Shown here piece after piece: positions 1,705-64,000 of a stretch of 64,000 nucleotides of DNA. The DNA is from Hemiscyllium ocellatum (taxonomy: Eukaryota): the NCBI RefSeq assembly GCF_020745735.1, contig NW_026869311.1, forward strand, positions 62,001-126,000, given 5' to 3'. The notes beneath the pieces are model-generated. The model had not been told where the DNA came from, did no database searches, and saw only the letters and a list, made by a program, of their open reading frames with translations. The translations under genes and the position numbers were made by a program. Numbering within the stretch: position 1 is the first letter of the stretch; each line of letters begins with the position of its first letter.

Positions 1705-3442
<1,738 letters not shown>

Positions 3443-3670
3443 CTTCCCTATTCCCACACTCTATCACCTAGACAACCGCAGAACTAAGCCTCTCAGCCAC
3501 AAGCTCTTCTATTTATCCTCCTAGGACATCCTGCACCCAACAGGGAGTGGCAGCACCAATGATGATTGATGATCCCCAATAGCCTATCAGGAATCACCAG
3601 GCATATAAGTATCAATGAACAAAGGAGGAGGGGTTTGGCAAGGAGCCATAACCTAGAGCCAATCAGAGAT
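3443..3670 (-). promoter_or_regulatory. Ferritin core promoter and short 5' UTR, copy 1 (GGATAAATA TATA-like box, Inr-like TTAGTTC, CCAAT boxes)
   Basis: GGATAAATA at 3518-3510, ~30 nt upstream of Inr-like TTAGTTC (~3485). CCAAT at 3556 and AGCCAATCAGAG at ~3657. The same architecture precedes all eight intact 5' ends. Confidence 0.7.
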
Positions 3671-3850
3671 TTGGAATCAATCTTGCGATCATTGCTTATA
3701 GATGAATAGATCCTGAACAAACTCCTAACTTTCTGTTTGTCTATGGATGGATAAGAATGAATTTGAACAATCTGACCTAAACTGGTTCTTCTGCTTTATG
3801 GTCCAGTTTCTCTGAGGTTTCACACAATGACATCAGGTTCCGTTACAGAT

Positions 3851-4086
3851 GGAGAAAGTGAGGCCTGCAGATGCTGGAGATCAAAGTCGAGAGTGTGGTG
3901 CTAGAAAAACGCAGCCGGCCAGGCAGCATCTGAGGAGCAGGTGAACAGATGTTTTGGGCAAAATCCCAGTAAGGCTTATGAAGGGCTTGATGAAGCCTGA
4001 TTGAAGGGCTTATGCTCGAAATGTCGATTCTCTTTCTCGGACACTGTCTGACCTGCTGTGTTTTTCCAGCACCATAATATTGACTC
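3851..4086. mobile_element. Penelope-like fold-back element
   Basis: Same family arms in inverted orientation around tgaagggcttatgctcgaaatgtcg. Confidence 0.65.
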
Positions 4087-4891: not shown

Positions 4892-6133
4892 GGCAGTGGA
4901 ATGTTCCTCCTGCAGGATGTTTGAGGTAGGGGTGACCACTGATACTCCTGCCAACTTCGTCTGCAGGAAATGCAGTCAGATCCTGCTCCTCACCGAACGA
5001 GTTAGGGAACTGGAACTGGAGTTGGATGAACTGAGGATTATTCGAGAGGCTGAGAGGGTGATTGATAGAAGCTACAGGGACATAGTTACGCCAGAGAACA
5101 GAGGTAGCTGGGTAACAGTTAGAGGTGGGAAGGGGAAGAAGCAGGCAGTGCAGGGATCCCCTGTGGTCGTTCCCCTAAAAAATAGGTATACAGCTTTGGA
5201 AACTGTTGGGGGGGATAGCCTTGCAGGTGTAAGCTGCAGTGAAGGGGTCTGTTGCGTGAGGTCTGTCTCTGAGACTAAGAAGGGAAAGGGGGAGAACAGG
5301 AGAGCGCTAGTTATAGGAGACTCTCTAGTTAGAGGGACGGACAGACGGTTCTGTGGACATGGGCGAGACTCTTGAATGGTTTGTTGCCTCCCGGGTGCCA
5401 GGGTCCGAGACGTCTCGGACCGTGTCTTCAGAATCCTTAAGGGGGAGGGTGTGCAGCCAGAAGTCGTGGTACACATTGGCACCAACGACATAGGTAGGAA
5501 GAGGGGTGGGGAGGTCATTCAAGAACTCAGGGAGTTAGATTAGATTAGATTACTTACAGTGTGGAAACAGGCCCTTCGGCCCAACAAGTCCACACCGACC
5601 CGCCGAAGCGCAACCCACCCATACCCCTACATTAACCCCTTACCTAACACTACGGGCAATTTAGCATGGCCAATTCACCTGGCCCGCACATCTTTGGACT
5701 GTGGGAGGAAACCGGAGCACCCGGAGGAAACCCACGCAGACACGGGGAGAACGTGCAAACTCCACACAGTCAGTCGCCTGAGTCGGGACTTGAACCCGGG
5801 TCTCAGGCGCTGTGAGGCAGCAGTGCTAACCACTGTGCTAACCACTGTGCCACTGTGCCGGCTGGAAGCTAAAAGCTAGGACAGACAGAGTCGTCATCTC
5901 TGGGTTGTTGCCGGTGCCACGTGACAGTGAGGCAAGGAATAGGGAGAGAGTGCAGTTGAACACGTGGCTGCAAGGATGGTGTAGGAGGGAGGGCTTAAGG
6001 TATTTGGACAATTGGACTGCATTCTGGGGAAGGTGGGACCTGTACAAACAGGACGGGTTGCACCTGAACCAGAAGGGCACCAATATCCTGGGGGGTAGGT
6101 TTGCTAGCACTCTTCGGGGGGGGTTTAAACTAA
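4892..6133 (+). pseudogene. CR1 ORF1 (zinc finger/leucine zipper + SGNH esterase), disrupted
   Basis: ORF track 4878-5375 and 5905-. Stop at 5373-5375 and SINE insertion at 5538-5859. Confidence 0.85.
5538..5859 (-). mobile_element. tRNA-derived V-SINE (HE1-like), young, nested in CR1 ORF1
   Basis: Minus strand: A box GGCACAGTGGTTAGCAC, B box GGTTCAAGTCC, V core TGTGTGGAGTTTGCACGTTCTCCCCGTGTCTGCGTGGGTTTCC, CR1-like 3' end and (TCTAA)n tail. Confidence 0.9.
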
Positions 6134-9030
6134 TTTGGCAGGGGGATGGGATCCAGACTTGTAGTCCAGCAAGTAAGCTAGCTGTGTTTCAGGATGTCCA
6201 AGAATGTAGGGAGGCTGTGGAGAAGGTAGCACTGACAGGGAATACTTGCAGACACAGAGATGGGCTCAAGTGCGTATACTTCAACGCAAGGAGTATCAGA
6301 AATAAGGTGGGTGAACTTAAAGCGTGGATCGGTACCTGGGACTACGATGTTGTGGCCATCACGGAAATGTGGATAGATGAGGGACAGGAATGGTTGTTGG
6401 AGGTTCCTGGTTACAGATGTTTCAGTAAGATTAGGGAGGGTGGTAAAAAAGGAGGGGGGGGTGGCATTGCTAATTAGAAATGGTATAACGGCTGCAGAAA
6501 GGAAGTTTGAGGGGGATCTGCCTTTGGAGGTAGTATGGGCTGAAGTCAGAAATAGGAAAGGTGCAGTCACCTTGTTGGGTGTTTACTATAGGCCCCCCAA
6601 TAGCAGCAGAGATGTAGAGGAACAGGAAGGGAAACAGATTTTGGAAAGGTGCAGAAGCCACAGGGTCATAGTCATGGGCGACTTCAACTTCCCAAATATT
6701 GATTGGAAGCTCTTTAGATCAAGTAGATTGAATGGGGCGGTGTTTGTGCAGTGTGTCCAGGAAGCTTTTCTAACTCAGTATGTAGATTGTCCAACCAGAG
6801 GGGAGGCCATATGGATTTGGTACTCGGTAATGAGGCGGGACAAGTGATGGGCTTGTTAGTGGGTGAACATTTTGGTGATGGTGACCACAATTCTGTGACT
6901 TTCACCTTGGTTATGGAGAGAGATAGGTACGCACAACAGGGTAGATTTTACAATTGGGGGAAGGGAAATTACGATGCTGTAAGACAGGATTTGAGGAGCA
7001 TAAGTTGGAAGCATAGGCTGTCAGGGAAGGATGTGGTGGAAATGTGGAACTTTTTCAAGGAGCAGATACGATGCGTCCTTGATATGTATGTACCTATCAG
7101 GCAGGAAAGAAATGATCGTGTGAGGGAGCCTTGGTTGACGAGGGAGGTTGAATGTCTAGTAAAGAGGAAGAAGGAGGCTTACATAAGGTTGAGGAAACAG
7201 GGTTCAGACAGAGCAGTGGAGGGATACAGGATAGCCAGAAGGGACCTGAAGAAAGGGATTAGGAGAGCTAAGAGAGGGCATGAAAAATCCTTGGCGGATA
7301 GGATCAAGGATAACCCCAAGGCATTTTATGCGTATGTGAGAAACATGAGAATGACGAGAACGAGGGTAGGTCCGATCAAGGACAGTAGTGGGAGATTGTG
7401 TATTGAGTCGGAACAGATAGGAGAGGTCTTGAACAAGTACTTTTCTTCAGTATTTACAAACGAGAGGGACCGTATTGTTGAAGAGGAGAGTGTGAAACGG
7501 ACTGGTAAACTAGAAAAGATACTTGTTAGGAAGGAAGGTGTGTTGGACATTTTGAACAACTTGAGGATAGACAAGTCCCCCGGGCCTGACGGGATATATC
7601 CTAGGATTATGTGGGAAGCAAGAGAGGAAATTGCAGTACCGTTGGCAATGATCTTTTCGTCTTCACTGTCAACGGGGGTGGTACCAGGTGATTGGAGAGT
7701 AGCGAATGTTGTGCCCCTGTTCAAAAAAGGGAATAGGGATAACCCCGGGAATTACAGGCCAGTTAGTCTTACTTCTGTGGTAGGCAAAGTAATGGAAAGG
7801 GTACTGAGGGATAGGATTTATGAGTATCTGGAAAGACACTGCTTGATTGGGGACAGCCAGCACGGATTTGTGAAGGGTAGGTCTTGCCTTACAAGTCTTA
7901 TTGAATTCTTTGAGGAGGTGACCAAGCATGTGGATGAGGGTAGAGCAGTGGGTGTAGTGTACATGGATTTTAGTAAGGCATTTGATAAGGTTTCCCATGG
8001 TAGGCTTATGCGGAAAGTCAGGAGGCATGGGATAGAGGGAAACTTGGCCAATTGGATTGAAAACTGGCTAACCGGTCGAAGTCAGAGAGTGGTGGTAGAT
8101 GGTAAATATTCAGCCTGGAGCCCAGTTACAAGTGGAGTTCCGCAGGGATCAGTTCTGGATCCTCTGCTGTTTGTAATTTTTATTAATGACTTGGATGAGG
8201 GAGTCGAAGGGTGGGTCAGTAAATTTGCAGATGATACGAAGATTGGTGGAGTTGTGGACAGTGAGGAGGGCTGTTGTCGGCTGCAAAGGGACTTAGATAT
8301 GATGCAGAGCTGGGCTGAGGAGTGGCAGATGGAGTTCAACCCTGCCAAGTGTGAGGTTGTCCATTTTGGAAGAACAAATAAGAATGCGGAATACAGGGTT
8401 AACGGTAGAGTTCTTAGTCAGGTGGAGGAACAGAGGGATCTTGGGGTCTATGTACATAGATCTTTGAAAGTTGCCACTCAGGTGGATAGAGCTTGTAAGA
8501 AGGCCTATGGTGTATTAGCGTTCATTAGCAGAGGGATCGAATTCAAGAGTCATGAAGTGATGTTGCAGCTGTACAGGACTTTGGTTAGGCCACATTTGGA
8601 GTACTGTGTGCAGTTCTGGTCGCCTCACTTTAGGAAAGATGTGGAAGCTTTGGAGAGGGTGCAGAGAAGATTTACCAGGATGTTGCCTGGAATGGAGAAT
8701 AGGTCGTACGAGGACAGGTTGAGAGTTCTCGGCCTTTTCTCATTGGAACGGCGAAGGATGAGGGGTGACTTGATAGAGGTTTATAAGATGATCAGAGGAA
8801 TAGATAGAGTAGACAGTCAGAAACTTTTTCCCCGGGTACAACAGAGTATTACAAGGGGACATAAATTTAAGGTGAAGGGTGGAAGGTATAGGGGAGATGT
8901 CAGGGGTGGGTTCTTTACCCAGAGAGTGGTGGGGGCATGGAATGCGCTGCCCGTGGCAGTGGTAGAGTCAGAATCATTGACGACCTTTAAGCGGCAATTG
9001 GATAGGTACATGGATGGGTGCTTAATCTAG
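6124..9030 (+). pseudogene. CR1 ORF2 endonuclease/reverse transcriptase (two frameshifts in the endonuclease part; RT segment open, ORF 6751-9030)
   Basis: Three overlapping ORFs (5905-6477, 6377-6847, 6751-9030) join into one APE-RT. Shifts at the G-run ~6455 and at ~6810. Confidence 0.92.
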
Positions 9031-10921: not shown

Positions 10922-11792
10922 TTAATACCAGAAGTTACACAGCTTGCTCCCTGCAGTCAGTTCAGTCACTCTCCCCCCCAGGATGAATCTGTCAAACAGG
11001 TACTCTCCCAGGCCATTCTCAGGGGCTCCCAGTCTCTTCAGGTTGGTGATGTGATCTCCCAGCTTCTTGATCATCTTCACTTGCTCATCCAAGTAGTGCC
11101 TCTCCAGGAAGTCACACAGCTGGAAGGGAAAGATGAAGATCAAATGCATCTTTTTCTCCTCTCCACCCCTCACCCCCACCTGAAAAAGAAATATTCCCAT
11201 TAATACAGGGGAGTGGATAGTTAAGTGATGTCACAAACTGCTGAGGAGCCTCTTTAAAATCAAAAAGCGCAGGTCTTGGCAACACCAGAAGCTTCTTCCA
11301 CTCCCATAACACCCTCCACCAGCAGGGATTGATTTTTGATCTGTTATTCAATTTATTACGCTAGAAGCAAAAAAGGTTAAAAATACCAAGAACTCACATG
11401 AGGGTCCATGTGGCCAGAGGAGAGTTTGTGCAGATCCAGCAGACTCTGGTTCACATCCTTCTCCATCTGCAGAGCTCTCTGCATTGCCTCCAGACCATTG
11501 CCCCACTCATCCTGCTCTGGCTTCTAGAGGAAGTGAAAAACATGGTGGTCACTTTCTTACAAGTGGTGTCCAATCCAGTAAAAGGTGGTCACAAGAAAGA
11601 AGAGGGCTGAACAAGGCACAAGTATAAACCAATTCGGTTAAGCCACTTCAAATCCATATTAAGTGAAGTTATTTCTAATTGAGTAGAATAGAAACTAAAT
11701 TAATCCAACCTTGACATCCTGCAGGAGGACTCGGCCTCCATGTTTATTCTGGAATTCCATCGGTTTTTCAGCGTGTTCCTGTTCTTCATGGG
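10922..11792 (-). pseudogene. Ferritin copy 2, 5'-deleted pseudogene
   Basis: Exon 4 (11119-10962, +2 nt in G-run, reads on to a stop at 10922), exon 3 (11523-11398) and only the 3' part of exon 2 (11792-11710, with L66P, R73H, R60Q). At 11793 the sequence jumps into DNA paralogous to the copy-1 upstream flank (~4143). No exon 1 or promoter. Confidence 0.92.
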
Positions 11793-16898: not shown

Positions 16899-19581
<2,683 letters not shown>

Positions 19582-19805
19582 CTTCACTATTCCTACTCAC
19601 TATCACTAAAACTAAATTTATTTCCCCCACTAGTTGTTGTATTTATCCTCCTGGGACATCCTGCACTCAACCAGGGCGTGGCAGCACCAATCATGATTGA
19701 CAATCCCTGACAGCCGCTCAAGAATTTCCAATAATCCAGGCACCAATGAACACAACAGGGAGGACTGTGAGGGAGGAGCTGAGACCCAGAACCAATCAGA
19801 GATCT
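19582..19805 (-). promoter_or_regulatory. Ferritin core promoter/5' UTR, copy 3
   Basis: GGATAAATA box plus CCAAT cluster homologous to copy 1. Confidence 0.65.
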
Positions 19806-23664: not shown

Positions 23665-25737
<2,073 letters not shown>

Positions 25738-25955
25738 CTTCACTATCACCTAGATAACTCTAGAACTAAACTTCACTCCCACTAGTTGTATTTATCCTCC
25801 TGGGACACCCTGCACTCAACCAGGGCGCGGCAGCACCAATCATGATTGACAATCCCTGACAGCCAATCAGGAATTTCCAATCAATCCAGGCACCAATGAA
25901 CACAACAGGGAGGACTGTAAGGGAAGAGCAGGGACCCAGAGCCAATCAGAGATCT
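25738..25955 (-). promoter_or_regulatory. Ferritin core promoter/5' UTR, copy 4
   Basis: GGATAAATA box, TGATTGACA and several CCAAT boxes. 5' UTR shortened by a deletion between CACTAT repeats. Confidence 0.65.
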
Positions 25956-29790: not shown

Positions 29791-32667
<2,877 letters not shown>

Positions 32668-32890
32668 CTTCACTATTCCTACTCACTATCACTAAAACTA
32701 AATTTATTTACCCCACGAGTTGTTGTATTTATCCTACTGGGACACCCTGCACTCAACCAGGGCGTGGCAGCACCAATCAAGATTGACAATCCCTGACAGC
32801 CGCTCAGGAATTTCCAATCAATCCAGGCACCAATGAACACAACAGGGAGGACTGTGAGGGAGGAGCTGAGACCCAGAGCCAATCAGAGGT
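32668..32890 (-). promoter_or_regulatory. Ferritin core promoter/5' UTR, copy 5
   Basis: Homologous to copy 3 promoter. Confidence 0.65.
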
Positions 32891-36538: not shown

Positions 36539-38290
<1,752 letters not shown>

Positions 38291-38525
38291 CTTCACTATT
38301 CCTACTCACTATCAGCTAGACTGGGCCACTTTCTCACAAGCTCTTGCATTTATCCTCCTGGGACACCCTGCACCTCACCAGGGAATGATGTCACCAACAA
38401 TGACTGACAATCCCTGATAACCAATTAGAAATCTCCATGAATCCAGGTACCAATGATCAAAGGAGTTGGGGGAAGAGCAGGCGGTGCTGTGGGGAGAAGT
38501 TGAGACCCAGAGCCAATCAGAGATT
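38291..38525 (-). promoter_or_regulatory. Ferritin core promoter/5' UTR, copy 6
   Basis: GGATAAAT box and AGCCAATCAGAG conserved. Confidence 0.6.
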
Positions 38526-43630: not shown

Positions 43631-44236
43631 GTCTGACACTAGAGTAAATTTGCACAGTTACTGCCTTTGCTGTTTGATTTCAAATATCTCTGGACAAAAA
43701 GTGTGAGTCTGGGAAAAGTTAACACCATCAAAGTTAACAGCTGATTTTAGCCATACCTGTGTGGGAGACCTCACAGCACAGGATCAGAAAGGTGCATAGT
43801 GTTAGAGTACAACCTTGCTGTAAATATCTAGTAGTGAGTCGAGTCAGATCTTTCTTGAAGAGATATTTTCCCCTTGATTAAATTTTAAAAGTATATTCCA
43901 TAAGGACTAGGTTAGCAGTTTGTACAGCCAAGGTCAGCATTTCATGACATGCCCGTTAGTGGCAACTACTGTTCACGTCAAGGGATGAGGTTGACGTTGA
44001 ATGTCAAGATCAAGGAGAGAACTCCCTGTGCACTAAACTATGCTTCAAAGTTGCTGCATCATTTCAATCCTTGTGTTATGGGGAAAGGAATCCAAAATGA
44101 GGCCATTCTTAGTCCTATATGGAGCAGTTTATTTAAAGTTTATGTATAGTCACAGTAGTGCCCAGGTCTCAGATACTCCAAAAGATCTTGTCTCCATTTT
44201 ACACATCAAAAAGCTCACTTCCTGCAGTCAGTTGAG

Positions 44237-46242
<2,006 letters not shown>

Positions 46243-46465
46243 CTTCACTATTCTTGCTCACTATCACCCAGACAATTCTAGAACTGAGCTTCCCTCCTAC
46301 AAGCTCTCCATTTATCTTCCTGGGACACTGTGCACCCACCCAGAGAGAGGCAGCACTAATGATGATTGGCTATTAGGGATTGTCAATCAGAAATCCTCCA
46401 TTAATCCAGACACCACCAAACAAAGGAGAGGTGGATGTGGAGGAGGAGCTTAGAGCCAGAGATTT
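46243..46465 (-). promoter_or_regulatory. Ferritin core promoter/5' UTR, copy 7
   Basis: AGATAAAT box. Proximal CCAAT cassette inverted, distal CCAAT deleted (gagccagagatt). Confidence 0.6.
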
Positions 46466-46949
46466 GGAATACAAAGAGGATTGGGAAGTTTGCCTAATTA
46501 ATGTCACTGCTTTTCAATTCCATGACCTTTTCCAAATCTGAAGATGAGTCACCAGATAACAGTCTGGAACCACAACTTTGAATTTAGTGATAATTTCTCA
46601 CATTTTGCTGAGATGGATTATCCGAATGAGGGGCTGTGAAGCTGATACAATACCTTAAACAAACTGACTTGCTTTGAGGGGAATTCTAACCAGCCATTGG
46701 ACAGAAAAATGGAAATGTGAGACTGAGAGGGAGTGAATGTGACTGTACCCAATGTCACCCACAGACCCGTCCCTCATTGGCTGCAGTGGGGTTGGGGACA
46801 GACTCGATGGAGCAGCTGGTCTATTCCTGCCCATCTGTGTTGTTTGTTCAATGAGTCCATTTCTGGTCGACTTTCAAATTGGCTGAGTAATATTTGAATC
46901 TGATAGTTGTCGATTCAGGTTTTCTTAAACTCTTCAGCTCATCCAAAAA

Positions 46950-50865: not shown

Positions 50866-52006
50866 AATCTTGAATTTACTTGGTAAATTTCTTAGCTACT
50901 GAGCACAATGACCTTTTTGGTTTAGAGCCTGATTAATTTGTCTCCTTTGAAAAGCAAGGTATTTGTGCCAGTAAAAGGTGTCAAGGGATAATGGTATTGG
51001 TGACCCACCCAGAAGTTGGTTTATCCCTTCTCTCCTGAAGGATGAATATCTGATCAGGAATAACCATGGCTTAAAAAAGGGCACCTGCCCAGTAAATGGT
51101 TACAGCATATCAGGGAATTGGAGGGAGGGGTTAGAGAACAGTGCACAGCCAGAATTACACCACACACACACCAAGGAAAAGGAATTGTTCAGGAAAGCAT
51201 ATTGTTACTTTGAAGTTTAAAAAAAAATGCAGCTGTGAAGTGGGAAGCTTCCCACATTTGAAGTTAGTGCTTTCCTAGCAGCATAGGGGACTCTGCCTCT
51301 AAACCCTGAAAAACCAGTCACTTGGACAGTTGATAGCACCCTAACCTAATCTTACAAAATGTAGATTTTTGGGTGAAGTCTTTAAGATCTGATATAGATC
51401 CTGGACTAGTGGTTAACAGGCTGACCTTCCACAGAAGAGAGCCATCCTAGTGATACTAAAGTCAGTCAAACTCTCCAACCTTCAATGGATGATCATTCTC
51501 AATTTGGTCAAAGATTAGGTTCGGTGGAAATATGGAATAAGATTGGTCCTTATCTTATTGCATGGCAATTAGCCTTGAAAATATTCTATTAGCTAATGGG
51601 CTGTTGCATTGCAATCAGTAAACTTTAGGCTACACTGAGCTGAGATATTAGTGGTCACAGCTAAGTTTGTGCTTTGTATTTTAAACAAATAGCTGAAGTT
51701 AATCATTAGAGCAACAGGAAATAGTCAAGCATTCAGGTTTCAACATCCCAGACAGGAACTCCCAATAATGCTCAGAAATTAACATTGATTAATATTAGAA
51801 GGTTAGCTGGAACAGTGGGTCTTCCCAGCTTGTAGAGGGTAACATTTTCAGATTTTGCTTTCAAAAAAAACCAAAACAAGTGTTTAGACTACAGGTAGTG
51901 AACATTTATTCACTGTAGATAGTTTCACAATATATCCCAGGTCACCACTAGAAGTCAGGCCATTCATCTCTACAGCATAGCCCAACAATAGTCTCAGTCC
52001 CTGCAG

Positions 52007-54420
<2,414 letters not shown>

Positions 54421-54779
54421 TTAAAATACAGAGAAGTTTGGGAAATTCATCTCATTGATGTCACTGCTTTTGAGTTCCATGACCTTCTTCCAATATTGAA
54501 ATGTCTCGTTGTTCAACACTCTAGTTTAAGCTTAATAACAAGTTACTACTTTTACTGATGATGCTTTGCTGGTCAAGTTTTTTTTACTTGCGAGGAGCTG
54601 TGAAACTAATGCAACAACCGTAGCAAATCAAGTTGCCTTAAGGGGATTTGCAAACCAGCCACTGGACAGAGAAATGGAAATGTGAGAATGAGAGGGAGTG
54701 AATGTTACTTAATAGTATGTCACCCACAGACTCAATCCCCCATTGGCTGCAGTGAGTTTGGGGACAGACGCGACGGAGC

Positions 54780-59531: not shown

Positions 59532-61742
<2,211 letters not shown>

Positions 61743-64000
61743 GACTGCAGAGAAATTTGGGAAATTAGATCTGATGATATCATTGAAGTTTTCATAATCT
61801 GCAAAGATCTCAATGTTTAATACCCTGGAACTACAACTTTCAATTTAATGAAAACATATTACTTTTGCTGGGGCAGCTTTTCATAACCTGGTCATGTTTG
61901 TTACTTGTGAGGAGTTGAGAAGCTGACACAATACTCAAAGTAATGAAGCTATCTTGAATTCAAGTTGAATTTGCAAATCAGGTATTGGATAGAGAAATGG
62001 AAATGTGAGACTGAGAGGGAATGAATGTGACTGTAGCCAGTGTCACCCACAGACTCATTCCACATTGGCTGCAGTGGGGTTAGGGACAGGCTCAATGGAG
62101 CAGCTGGTCTTTTCCTGCCCGTCTGTATTGTTTGTTCGATGAGTCCTTTTCCATTGACATTCAATGTGGCTGAGGAATATTTTCTAATTGATCTGTTCAG
62201 AGATTTTATTGTATACCTCTGGAGCAGATGAGCCTTGAGCCGGTGCCTCCTATCTCTAATGTCAGAACATTACCACTGTCCTACAAAAGCTTCTTTGTGG
62301 TCACAAAGGATCATATGCAAACTGATAGGCATCACGTAATCACTCAGTTTCCAAGAGAAATGTTGATTGAGACCTGAATTTACTGTGACTGGGGGGAAAA
62401 TGATTGGTCTTATCTACAAGAACTCAGAATTCAGTATTTACCTTTAGGGACAGTGATAAGAATTGCCATTTTGTGTTGGAGGATTTTGATAGTAACCTCC
62501 TTGTAAGATGCAAAATTAATACTAATCTCCTTGGCCTTCACAGCATTTCTTAAGCAAGTTCCTGAAGTGAATGGTTAAACATTGGATAGTTCCAGTTGTA
62601 AAAAAGATGAAAACATTGACAGCATGAAGGAAAATGGTGATCCGGTAGAGTGGAGGACAAATTAATGTGTGATGACACTCCATGTAAACATTACAGTTTG
62701 TTATGTTGGGGTTTTGTTAATGGAGAGAACGACTGTAAAGTGAGTTAACTTGAGTTTGATAGCTTTTAACTCCCCTTCAAAGCTACTGCTTGAGATTTAA
62801 TTAGGAGTTTTAAAGAAACAACTTTACAATCAATTTTCAACACAGATTTCCACTTGGCTCTTTCAAGAATAAAATGTGCCAGTCAAGGAAGCTTAATAGA
62901 ACACTGGCCTCAAATCTTCTTGCTAAAAGGTTGTTATACAAAACCCTGATTATACCCTCCACCCCCCTTGGAGCAGTGAACAGATCTGGGTATCATAACT
63001 TGAATAGATTGACATTGGAAGAGAGTGTAGGCTTACAAGAATGGCACTGGAATGTCAGGTGTTGATTTATGGAAGGGAGATTATACAATCCCTCCTTGTT
63101 TTCCCCAAGTATTTACATGGGATAGGTGGTAATCTGAAGTCAGATCACAGGAAAGACAAAACAAATTATTTCAATTTGTAATCCCTGGGTTGTTGATTCT
63201 AGAACGAGTGCTATTGTCTGAGAATTAGTACCACTGTTCAGTAGAGTGGTTAGGAAACACTTCTGCAGCAAGTCAAGCTGGAGATTTTGTAAACTTTTCC
63301 ACTAAGAAATTGTTTTGTTAATTTTGGACTTGTTAAAAGAAAAATGTGGAAGACATATGGAGCTAGGCCATAGATCAGCTTGAAGTGGTAGACTAGGCTC
63401 AAATGACTGCATGGGCCTACATGTAAAGAACTCCAAGCCCCAGGTGATTCTATAAACTACTCTGCACAGGATTTCATGAATATTATAATCAGAGGGATCC
63501 ACCATTCTATGAAGGGTCATAACCTGAAACATTAGAGAAAAATCAGCCAGATGCTATTAGCCCAGCTTTTAGAGCTGCATCTGTTTGTACTGCAAGGGTA
63601 TTTCACTCTAGCACTATTCTTTCGTGAGAATGCTAACACTCCTGGCTTCACTAGGTCAGTTTCTCATTGACTGAGGAGAATTTCAGCAGCTTGTTTTCAA
63701 GCAGCTAGTGTTTCCTAAACCCACTACCATCTAAGACTGGAATCTGTCCCATGCCCTCTAGGAGAAAGGCACTACACAAATTCAAGTTGGTGAATTGCAA
63801 TTGGATTAAGTAACCTTCTGCAATGCAATTAAGCAAACTAGGACTTTGTTATGTCATAACCATATCTTGATGTGTTCACTTAAAGTGAATATCTTCACTT
63901 TGGTGTTGAAAGAGAATTAGCAGCTATTGAAAACAAAATCCAGTCTTTGAAAGTTTTATTGAGTTAGTGATCAGAACACTTGAATCCCAGGTCTCCCAGC

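Follow-up and report, generated by a model that had tools for sequence, protein, structure and literature searches.

Tandem Ferritin Genes With Short Predicted Leaders and No Iron-Responsive Element in Hemiscyllium ocellatum

Introduction

Whether a vertebrate cytosolic ferritin gene can dispense with the iron-responsive element (IRE) is the question raised by the locus described herein. The ferritin IRE, a textbook instance of control at the level of translation, is generally assumed to be present in all vertebrate cytosolic ferritins; iron regulatory proteins (IRPs) can hold back ferritin translation only where the mRNA has a cap-proximal IRE. The 64 kb of DNA from the epaulette shark Hemiscyllium ocellatum under study (henceforth the window, by which the entire stretch is meant) holds a tandem array of ferritin genes, and the original prediction, drawn from the nucleotide sequence without database searches, was that none of its eight 5' UTRs carries an IRE, that the genes consequently escape IRP repression, and that they are controlled transcriptionally.

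Gene Content and Protein Products of the Array

Mapping of the copy 1 exons onto the 64 kb resolves nine head-to-tail ferritin genes, all on the minus strand (Table 1). Seven of the nine have intact open reading frames, while copy 6 contains a premature stop and copy 2 is without its 5' part. The eight complete copies are built of exons of 102, 147, 126, and 156 nt, with GT-AG boundaries at every intron and introns placed as in other vertebrate ferritins; their exons are 95–100% identical among copies, and the spacers are unalignable past the promoter. The original count of eight 5' UTRs thus stands, with the qualification that only seven of the genes behind them are intact (copy 6 being interrupted by its TGA) and that copy 2 lacks exon 1 altogether. 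The proteins of copies 7 and 8 terminate slightly early, with GEE followed by the stop.

Among recorded assemblies, GCA_020745735.1 alone has a protein identical to that of copy 1, on a 155,646-bp unplaced contig and on a 50-Mb chromosome, and the protein of copy 5 is a RefSeq protein of Hemiscyllium ocellatum that is likewise placed on both scaffold and chromosome; the unplaced scaffold therefore duplicates part of a chromosomal array. The TGA of copy 6 stands where the protein of its chromosomal twin, which is intact, has Cys, and copy 6 on the unplaced scaffold is a nonsense allele or a pseudogene.

The 176-aa product yields full-length matches to frog M ferritin (E 1.5e-87) and human H ferritin, which are its best solved relatives, and its homologues carry PF00210, the ferritin four-helix bundle. 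In a residue alignment against frog M ferritin, the ferroxidase ligands Glu, Tyr, Glu, His, Glu, and Gln are all kept, as they are in every intact copy, and the alignment to the 176-aa frog protein is collinear, with neither an insertion nor an N-terminal extension. The array subunit is of the H/M type, with an intact ferroxidase site. Its closest proteins are models named "ferritin heavy chain A-like" or "higher subunit-like" from Chiloscyllium, Stegostoma, Rhincodon, Heptranchias, Pristiophorus, and others, and several of the corresponding genes sit in very large clusters.

Two features unrelated to the ferritin genes were also recorded in the window. The interval between copies 1 and 2 holds a non-LTR retrotransposon (5905–9030, plus strand, opposite to the ferritin genes), whose open reading frames encode GDSL-esterase-like, endonuclease (Exo_endo_phos), and reverse-transcriptase (RVT_1, E 2e-36) domains and which accounts for the strong GC skew at 6–10 kb. 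A long, near-perfect hairpin with GTGCTGGAAAAGCACAGCAGGTCAGGCAGCATC-type arms gives an Rfam mir-750-like match at 45781–45855 (minus strand; 40 bits against a gathering score of 60); as the arm motif recurs in the window, for example at about 380–570 and 3860–4080, a curated miRNA identity was dropped and the hairpin is read as a dispersed repeat.

Table 1. Coordinates of the ferritin array features and of the related vestiges (window positions unless another locus is named).
Feature	Position	Strand	Remarks
Copy 1, coding region	1705..3442	-	Exons 3442-3341, 2622-2476, 2255-2130, 1860-1705; 176 aa, H/M-type, ferroxidase residues intact
Copy 1, ATG	3442-3440	-	
Copy 1, predicted leader (43 nt)	3443..3485	-	Runs from the initiator A up to the ATG; purine-rich, no IRE
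Leader motif GGTGATAG(T/A)G(A/T)G, all copies	e.g., 3462-3473 (copy 1), 46262-46273 (copy 7)		
Copy 1, TATA box GATAAATA	3510..3517	-	TATAAATA/TATAAGTA in other species
Copy 1, proximal promoter	3518..3672	-	Inverted CCAAT (ATTGG) boxes at 3663, 3580, 3560; sole upstream block common to copies
Copy 2, truncated pseudogene	10962..11792	-	Exon 1 absent; exon 2 without first 64 nt, last 83 nt kept; exon 4 indel (2-nt length difference)
Copy 3, gene and TATA (19647)	16899..19647	-	ATG 19581; predicted leader 19613-19582
Copy 4, gene and TATA (25796)	23665..25796	-	ATG 25737; predicted leader 25767-25738
Copy 5, gene and TATA (32733)	29791..32733	-	ATG 32667; protein identical to XP_060679569.1, Hemiscyllium ocellatum
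Copy 6, gene and TATA (38354)	36539..38354	-	ATG 38290; TGA at 36689-36691, second codon of exon 4
Copy 7, gene and TATA (46316)	44234..46316	-	ATG 46242; proximal ATTGG boxes lost; C-terminus GEE-stop
Copy 8, gene and TATA (54263)	52004..54263	-	ATG 54188
Copy 9, gene and TATA (61583)	59532..61583	-	ATG 61508
Distal conserved element, two forward CCAAT boxes	46660..46790	-	About 420-550 nt upstream of copy 7 ATG
Distal element, further copies	54633-54754 (copy 8), 61976-62078 (copy 9)	-	Only copies 7-9 in window
IRE 5'-half vestige TTCTTGCTTCAA	Heptranchias perlo leader (locus 2950-3000); Amblyraja (locus 3973-4000)		Sevengill 3' stem gone

Search for Iron-Responsive Elements

The Rfam models IRE_I and IRE_II have no match in the whole 64 kb, whether at the gathering score (34 bits for IRE_I, RF00037) or at E<=10, so that the RF00037 scan proposed with the original prediction, extended here from the genes to the entire window, returned nothing. 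The 5' region of copy 1 searched by itself with laxer filters (3341–4000, 660 nt) is likewise without an Rfam IRE, and in neither strand of the window did a SIREs-like scan for C-N5-loop-N5 with paired stems pick up a candidate with a canonical loop, so that the IRE signature of a CAGWGH apical loop on a 5-bp upper stem with a bulged C on its 5' side is lacking. An IRE is thereby absent from the leaders, introns, 3' ends, and all spacers of the 64 kb, and the central claim, that the eight 5' UTRs are free of the element, is upheld by the Rfam models, by the motif-plus-stem scan, and by the folding results given below. Neither CAGTG nor CAGAG occurs between the TATA box and the ATG of any copy with an exon 1, in agreement with the statement that CAGTG is missing from this interval in copies 1 and 3–9. 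Given that about 0.5 CAGTG would be expected by chance in the roughly 560 nt concerned, the lack of the pentamer is close to what chance would give, and it is the model-based scans that constitute the informative tests.

The sensitivity of these scans was gauged on IRE-bearing ferritins of relatives (skate and Chiloscyllium-type, rather than the Hemiscyllium ocellatum genome). Skate FTH1, represented by two genes and two spliced transcript contigs, scores 46.7 bits in the same Rfam scan, its IRE being located 100–136 nt upstream of the ATG and folding as a textbook bulged hairpin (-21.3 kcal/mol), and a bamboo-shark ferritin mRNA, from a shark nearer to the source species and represented by three spliced contigs, carries IRE_I at 42–42.6 bits; the method thus detects IREs in cartilaginous-fish ferritins. 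The three bamboo-shark contigs encode a protein identical to the Chiloscyllium plagiosum "ferritin heavy chain-like" protein, whose gene shares a 27.9-Mb contig with an array gene of that shark. IRE-bearing ferritins thus occur side by side with the arrays in this family of sharks. The Chiloscyllium-identical spliced contigs come from ENA assemblies labeled as metagenomes and are host or animal transcripts or cDNA. Exact-protein look-ups for copy 1 and for its homologues in Chiloscyllium, Scyliorhinus, and Carcharodon yielded no transcript contig belonging to the array lineage.

Promoter Architecture and Predicted Leaders

An alignment of the 360 nt upstream of the ATG reveals a conserved block in eight copies that extends from about -280 to the ATG, carries an invariant GGATAAAT(A), and contains a TATA box, GATAAATA, that is invariant in all eight copies with an exon 1. 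The distance from TATA box to ATG, previously put at about 50–70 nt, is measured at 59–75 nt across the eight copies (75 nt in copies 1, 8, and 9, 74 in copy 7, 66 in copies 3 and 5, 64 in copy 6, and 59 in copy 4), and an initiator-like YYANWYY/YAGTT lies 29–34 nt downstream of the TATA box in each of them. Start sites are predictions from this TATA and initiator geometry; as the position of YAGTT sets the predicted start, leaders of 30–43 nt are obtained, with lengths of 43 nt in copies 1, 7, 8, and 9, 32 nt in copies 3, 5, and 6, and 30 nt in copy 4. For copy 1, the predicted leader (3485–3443) coincides exactly with the stretch that had been quoted as a leader of about 43 nt.

Inverted CCAAT boxes are plentiful upstream of the TATA boxes, with a mean of 3.0 ATTGG per promoter against a window background of 0.53 per 300 nt, and the Y-box-like CTGATTGGCT cores of these promoters presumably recall oocyte promoters. 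Copy 7 has lost all of its proximal ATTGG boxes and keeps the distal CCAAT element listed in Table 1. This element is conserved in the Rhincodon, Heptranchias, and Pristis array loci and contains no IRE; in Heptranchias it is interrupted by an insertion, again without an IRE. A distal promoter or enhancer module seems a better description of it than an exon.

The predicted leaders are 60–69% purine in the eight copies, that of copy 1 having been described earlier as purine-rich, contain no upstream ATG in any of the eight, and end in a strong AAGATGG start context. Their minimum free energies of -2.3 to -13.5 kcal/mol correspond to z-scores of -1.36 to +1.42 against dinucleotide shuffles; shuffled sequence thus folds as well as the leaders do, and no stable hairpin of the sort that an IRE would place within about 40–60 nt of the predicted cap site is seen. 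A hairpin of 6 bp that the 43-nt leaders can form was considered and dropped, being weak, missing in sawfish, and devoid of covariation, as was an HSE-like palindrome, TTCTAGAA, that is not conserved among copies. What is conserved is the motif GGTGATAG(T/A)G(A/T)G, with its GATA-like core, in Hemiscyllium, Rhincodon, Heptranchias, and Pristis; the leader block AGTTCTAGARTTGTCYRGGTGATAGTGAG is near-identical from Hemiscyllium to Rhincodon and Heptranchias, and Pristis also has GGTGATAGTGAG. Such conservation is not what one usually sees in a 5' UTR whose known regulatory element is gone.

Conservation in Relatives and Vestiges of the Element

Array loci of Heptranchias (two loci), Rhincodon, Pristis, Amblyraja, and Callorhinchus, amounting to 97 kb, were compared with the window. 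The same promoter and short leader accompany 18 of the 18 first exons in the whale shark, sevengill shark, sawfish, skate, and chimaera loci, in the common layout CAATCATCATTGGTG..TGCAGG.TGTCCCAG.AGTATAAATACAAGAGCTTGTG, with YAGTT about 32 nt on and then the short leader. Exon 1 ends at the same point in the skate, chimaera, and shark loci as in the window genes, tandem arrays are present in the Rhincodon, Heptranchias, and Pristis loci, and no IRE is detected by Rfam in the 97 kb at E<=10. Between copy 7 of Hemiscyllium and Heptranchias, only the exons, the promoter with the leader (-272 to +106), the distal element, and a short block in intron 1 can be aligned, so that the promoter and leader are under constraint. 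The intron-1 block of copy 7 (45982–46042, minus strand) matches three Heptranchias copies at about 80% over about 45 nt, and the rest of the intron is unalignable.

In a maximum-likelihood tree, the window lineage forms a clade of its own that includes a chimaera gene (support 95/92). This array clade stands apart from the FTH1 clade (skate FTH1 with its IRE, chimaera, teleost, and axolotl) and from a tetrapod and coelacanth M/A-like clade; its batoid members nest inside the sharks, probably owing to long branches. The lineage is specific to cartilaginous fishes and dates back at least to the divergence of chimaeras from sharks and rays.

Remnants of an IRE were sought with a 17-nt query comprising the 5' half and the loop, matched without gaps and with up to four substitutions against all sequences gathered. 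The matches with two or fewer substitutions, of which about 0.02 would be expected by chance in everything searched, consist of the canonical FTH1 sites and the leader of one sevengill array gene (2 mismatches in 17, the loop CAGTG having become TAGAG). This sevengill leader aligns to the IRE-bearing 5' UTR of the bamboo shark better than all 1000 shuffles, and the IRE 5' half is likewise recognizable in a skate array-gene leader (p about 0.003); neither of the two scores as an IRE by Rfam. These vestiges point to ancestral loss of the element, and on the reading adopted here the lineage goes back to an IRE-bearing gene whose promoter and leader position were the same, the IRE having presumably decayed and, in Hemiscyllium, been erased. 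Two further candidates were set aside. The sequence TCCTTGCTTCAAT, upstream of the TATA box in two sevengill copies, has an IRE-like look but stands more than four substitutions from the 17-mer in the ungapped scan, and a vestige in the window leaders themselves (TAGAG at about +8 and GATAGTG at about +22) is not claimed, the alignment of these leaders to IRE-bearing 5' UTRs giving p 0.17–0.99 against shuffles.

Regulation of the Array and Alternative Explanations

Because IRP repression operates through a cap-proximal IRE and the leaders have none, we infer that the array genes escape it, a part of the original prediction that is well supported by sequence. The further part, that the genes are controlled transcriptionally, is plausible, in view of the conservation of the TATA box, initiator, and inverted CCAAT boxes from chimaera to sharks and of the ovary expression reported for Greenland shark in a preprint; expression of the array would then be promoter-driven and probably ovary-biased. 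Each gene has a compact promoter of its own, which combines several inverted CCAAT boxes with a TATA box and an initiator. It is considered likely that each mRNA carries an unstructured, purine-rich leader of 30–43 nt with the AAGATGG context and no IRE, and that the lineage came to this state through decay of the element. With no cap-proximal IRE in the message, IRP1/2 would be unable to block ribosome recruitment, and output would depend on how active the promoters are and how many genes there are, not on an iron-dependent translational brake. IRE-bearing ferritin genes persist in cartilaginous fishes, where they would serve iron-responsive storage.

A tentative extension, which we regard as rather doubtful, is that a single ferritin gene lost its IRE by decay in the cartilaginous-fish ancestor and then evolved a short leader whose conserved block, AGTTCTAGARTTGTCYRGGTGATAGTGAG, is a new cis-element, which together with the Y-box-like inverted CCAAT boxes would drive iron-independent, oocyte-type expression of a hugely amplified ferritin serving as a maternal iron store, an independent counterpart of snail yolk ferritin.

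The conservation of the leader block across sharks and sawfish leaves room for other post-transcriptional or promoter-proximal control, and the leader could hold another regulatory element (a non-canonical IRP site, or a translational or promoter-proximal element) such that the genes are not simply promoter-driven. The persistence of the AGTTCTAGARTTGTCYRGGTGATAGTGAG/GGTGATAGTGAG block across more than one order, while introns have become unalignable, speaks for such an element, as does a MAFFT alignment that sets the conserved GATAGTG of the window opposite the vestigial sevengill loop (AATAGAG), which is treated as a lead only. No stem surrounds the motif, however, its loop would begin with U where an IRE has C, and a bulged C is missing; the leaders show no more folding than their shuffles and have no significant similarity to IRE-bearing 5' UTRs, and the conservation may act at the level of DNA, through the initiator or a downstream GATA-like site. 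An additional element in the leader is, on balance, unlikely.

That the copies are decaying, unexpressed duplicates, in which absence of the IRE reflects nothing other than pseudogene erosion, is very improbable. The truncation of copy 2, the stop in copy 6, and the missing proximal ATTGG boxes of copy 7 are what erosion would produce, and searches of sequencing runs found no RNA record for Hemiscyllium ocellatum (the RNA status of other runs being guessed); nevertheless, seven open reading frames are uninterrupted and retain correct splice sites and ferroxidase residues, exons have remained 95–100% identical beside spacers that cannot be aligned beyond the promoter, conservation of the promoter and leader reaches as far as chimaera, the chromosomal twin of copy 6 is intact, and expression of such clusters has been reported (10.1101/2024.09.09.611499).

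An upstream non-coding exon carrying an IRE, which the original prediction had named as evidence against itself, was looked for by Rfam, by inspection for acceptor sites, and by comparison of spacers, and none was found in the window. No acceptor-like AG occurs within 80 nt upstream of the ATGs, where the pyrimidine tract reaches at most 0.61 against a mean of 0.89 in 24 true acceptors, and the only block common to five or more copies in the 2.5–7.5-kb spacers is that at -284 to -1, with no conserved upstream exon; for copy 9, 2.4 kb of upstream sequence lies inside the window. Residence of the IRE in an unrecognized upstream exon or in an alternative-promoter transcript can be given hardly any weight, since, against a start site that is predicted, a distal CCAAT element 420–550 nt upstream of copies 7–9, and the short coverage upstream of copy 9, there stand the lack of an IRE on both strands of the 64 kb with all inter-copy spacers and in the 97 kb of orthologous arrays, the lack of an acceptor-like site before the ATG, and the lack of any shared upstream block other than the promoter. 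Escape from the IRPs, with promoter-set output from IRE-less leaders, is retained as the preferred reading.

Comparison With Known Ferritin Systems

A vertebrate lineage here possesses, in dozens or hundreds of copies, genes for a ferroxidase-competent ferritin without an IRE beside genes that bear one, which amounts to a natural experiment on the purpose of IRP control. The array is also a candidate system for maternal or yolk iron provisioning in animals with very large eggs, and the leaders compared herein form a dated series of IRE decay, from an intact element through a 5' half only to one that has been erased.

A close precedent is the Greenland shark, in which 155 FTL-like and 179 FTH1-like copies have been described in clusters that are syntenic with those of white shark and have an age of 250 My or more; the main ferritin cluster is reported to be expressed specifically in the ovary (10.1101/2024.09.09.611499). 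These clusters are of the same tandem, old, and distant-shark-conserved kind as the array in the window, with its nine copies in 64 kb. The preprint is silent on iron and on the IRE (10.1101/2024.09.09.611499), and the loss of the IRE, the anatomy of promoter and leader, and the vestiges are not described there. Amplification of the clusters is thus already published, whereas the missing IRE of these arrays was found in no paper, including in searches of the shark ferritin and IRE literature.

The canonical H, M, and L ferritin mRNAs (RF00037) share with the array genes the fold, the four exons, and the ferroxidase residues of the H/M type, but have a cap-proximal IRE in a leader of about 150–200 nt, where the array genes have 30–43 nt and no IRE. 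The promoters of the array genes are rich in TATA and inverted CCAAT boxes, in contrast to the GC-rich promoter of skate FTH1, and the array genes, unlike canonical ferritins, are massively amplified in tandem.

Among IRE-less ferritins, the yolk ferritin of the snails Lymnaea and Biomphalaria has a 5' UTR without an IRE, and the soma ferritin of these animals keeps its IRE (PMC10799875). The ovary expression of such clusters in Greenland shark would fit a role in maternal iron provisioning and parallels this snail system, in which a reproductive-tissue ferritin without an IRE stands in the same division of labor. Snail yolk ferritin is nevertheless secreted by means of a signal peptide and carries a 42-aa insertion, whereas the shark proteins are of the ordinary 176-aa cytosolic type, and the origins of the two are independent. 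Within vertebrates, FTMT is an H-type ferritin paralogue without an IRE (PMC13010531). It is intronless, single-copy, and furnished with a mitochondrial presequence, whereas the array genes have three introns, encode a 176-aa product that begins where the mature H/M chains do and bears no N-terminal extension, and stand in tandem.
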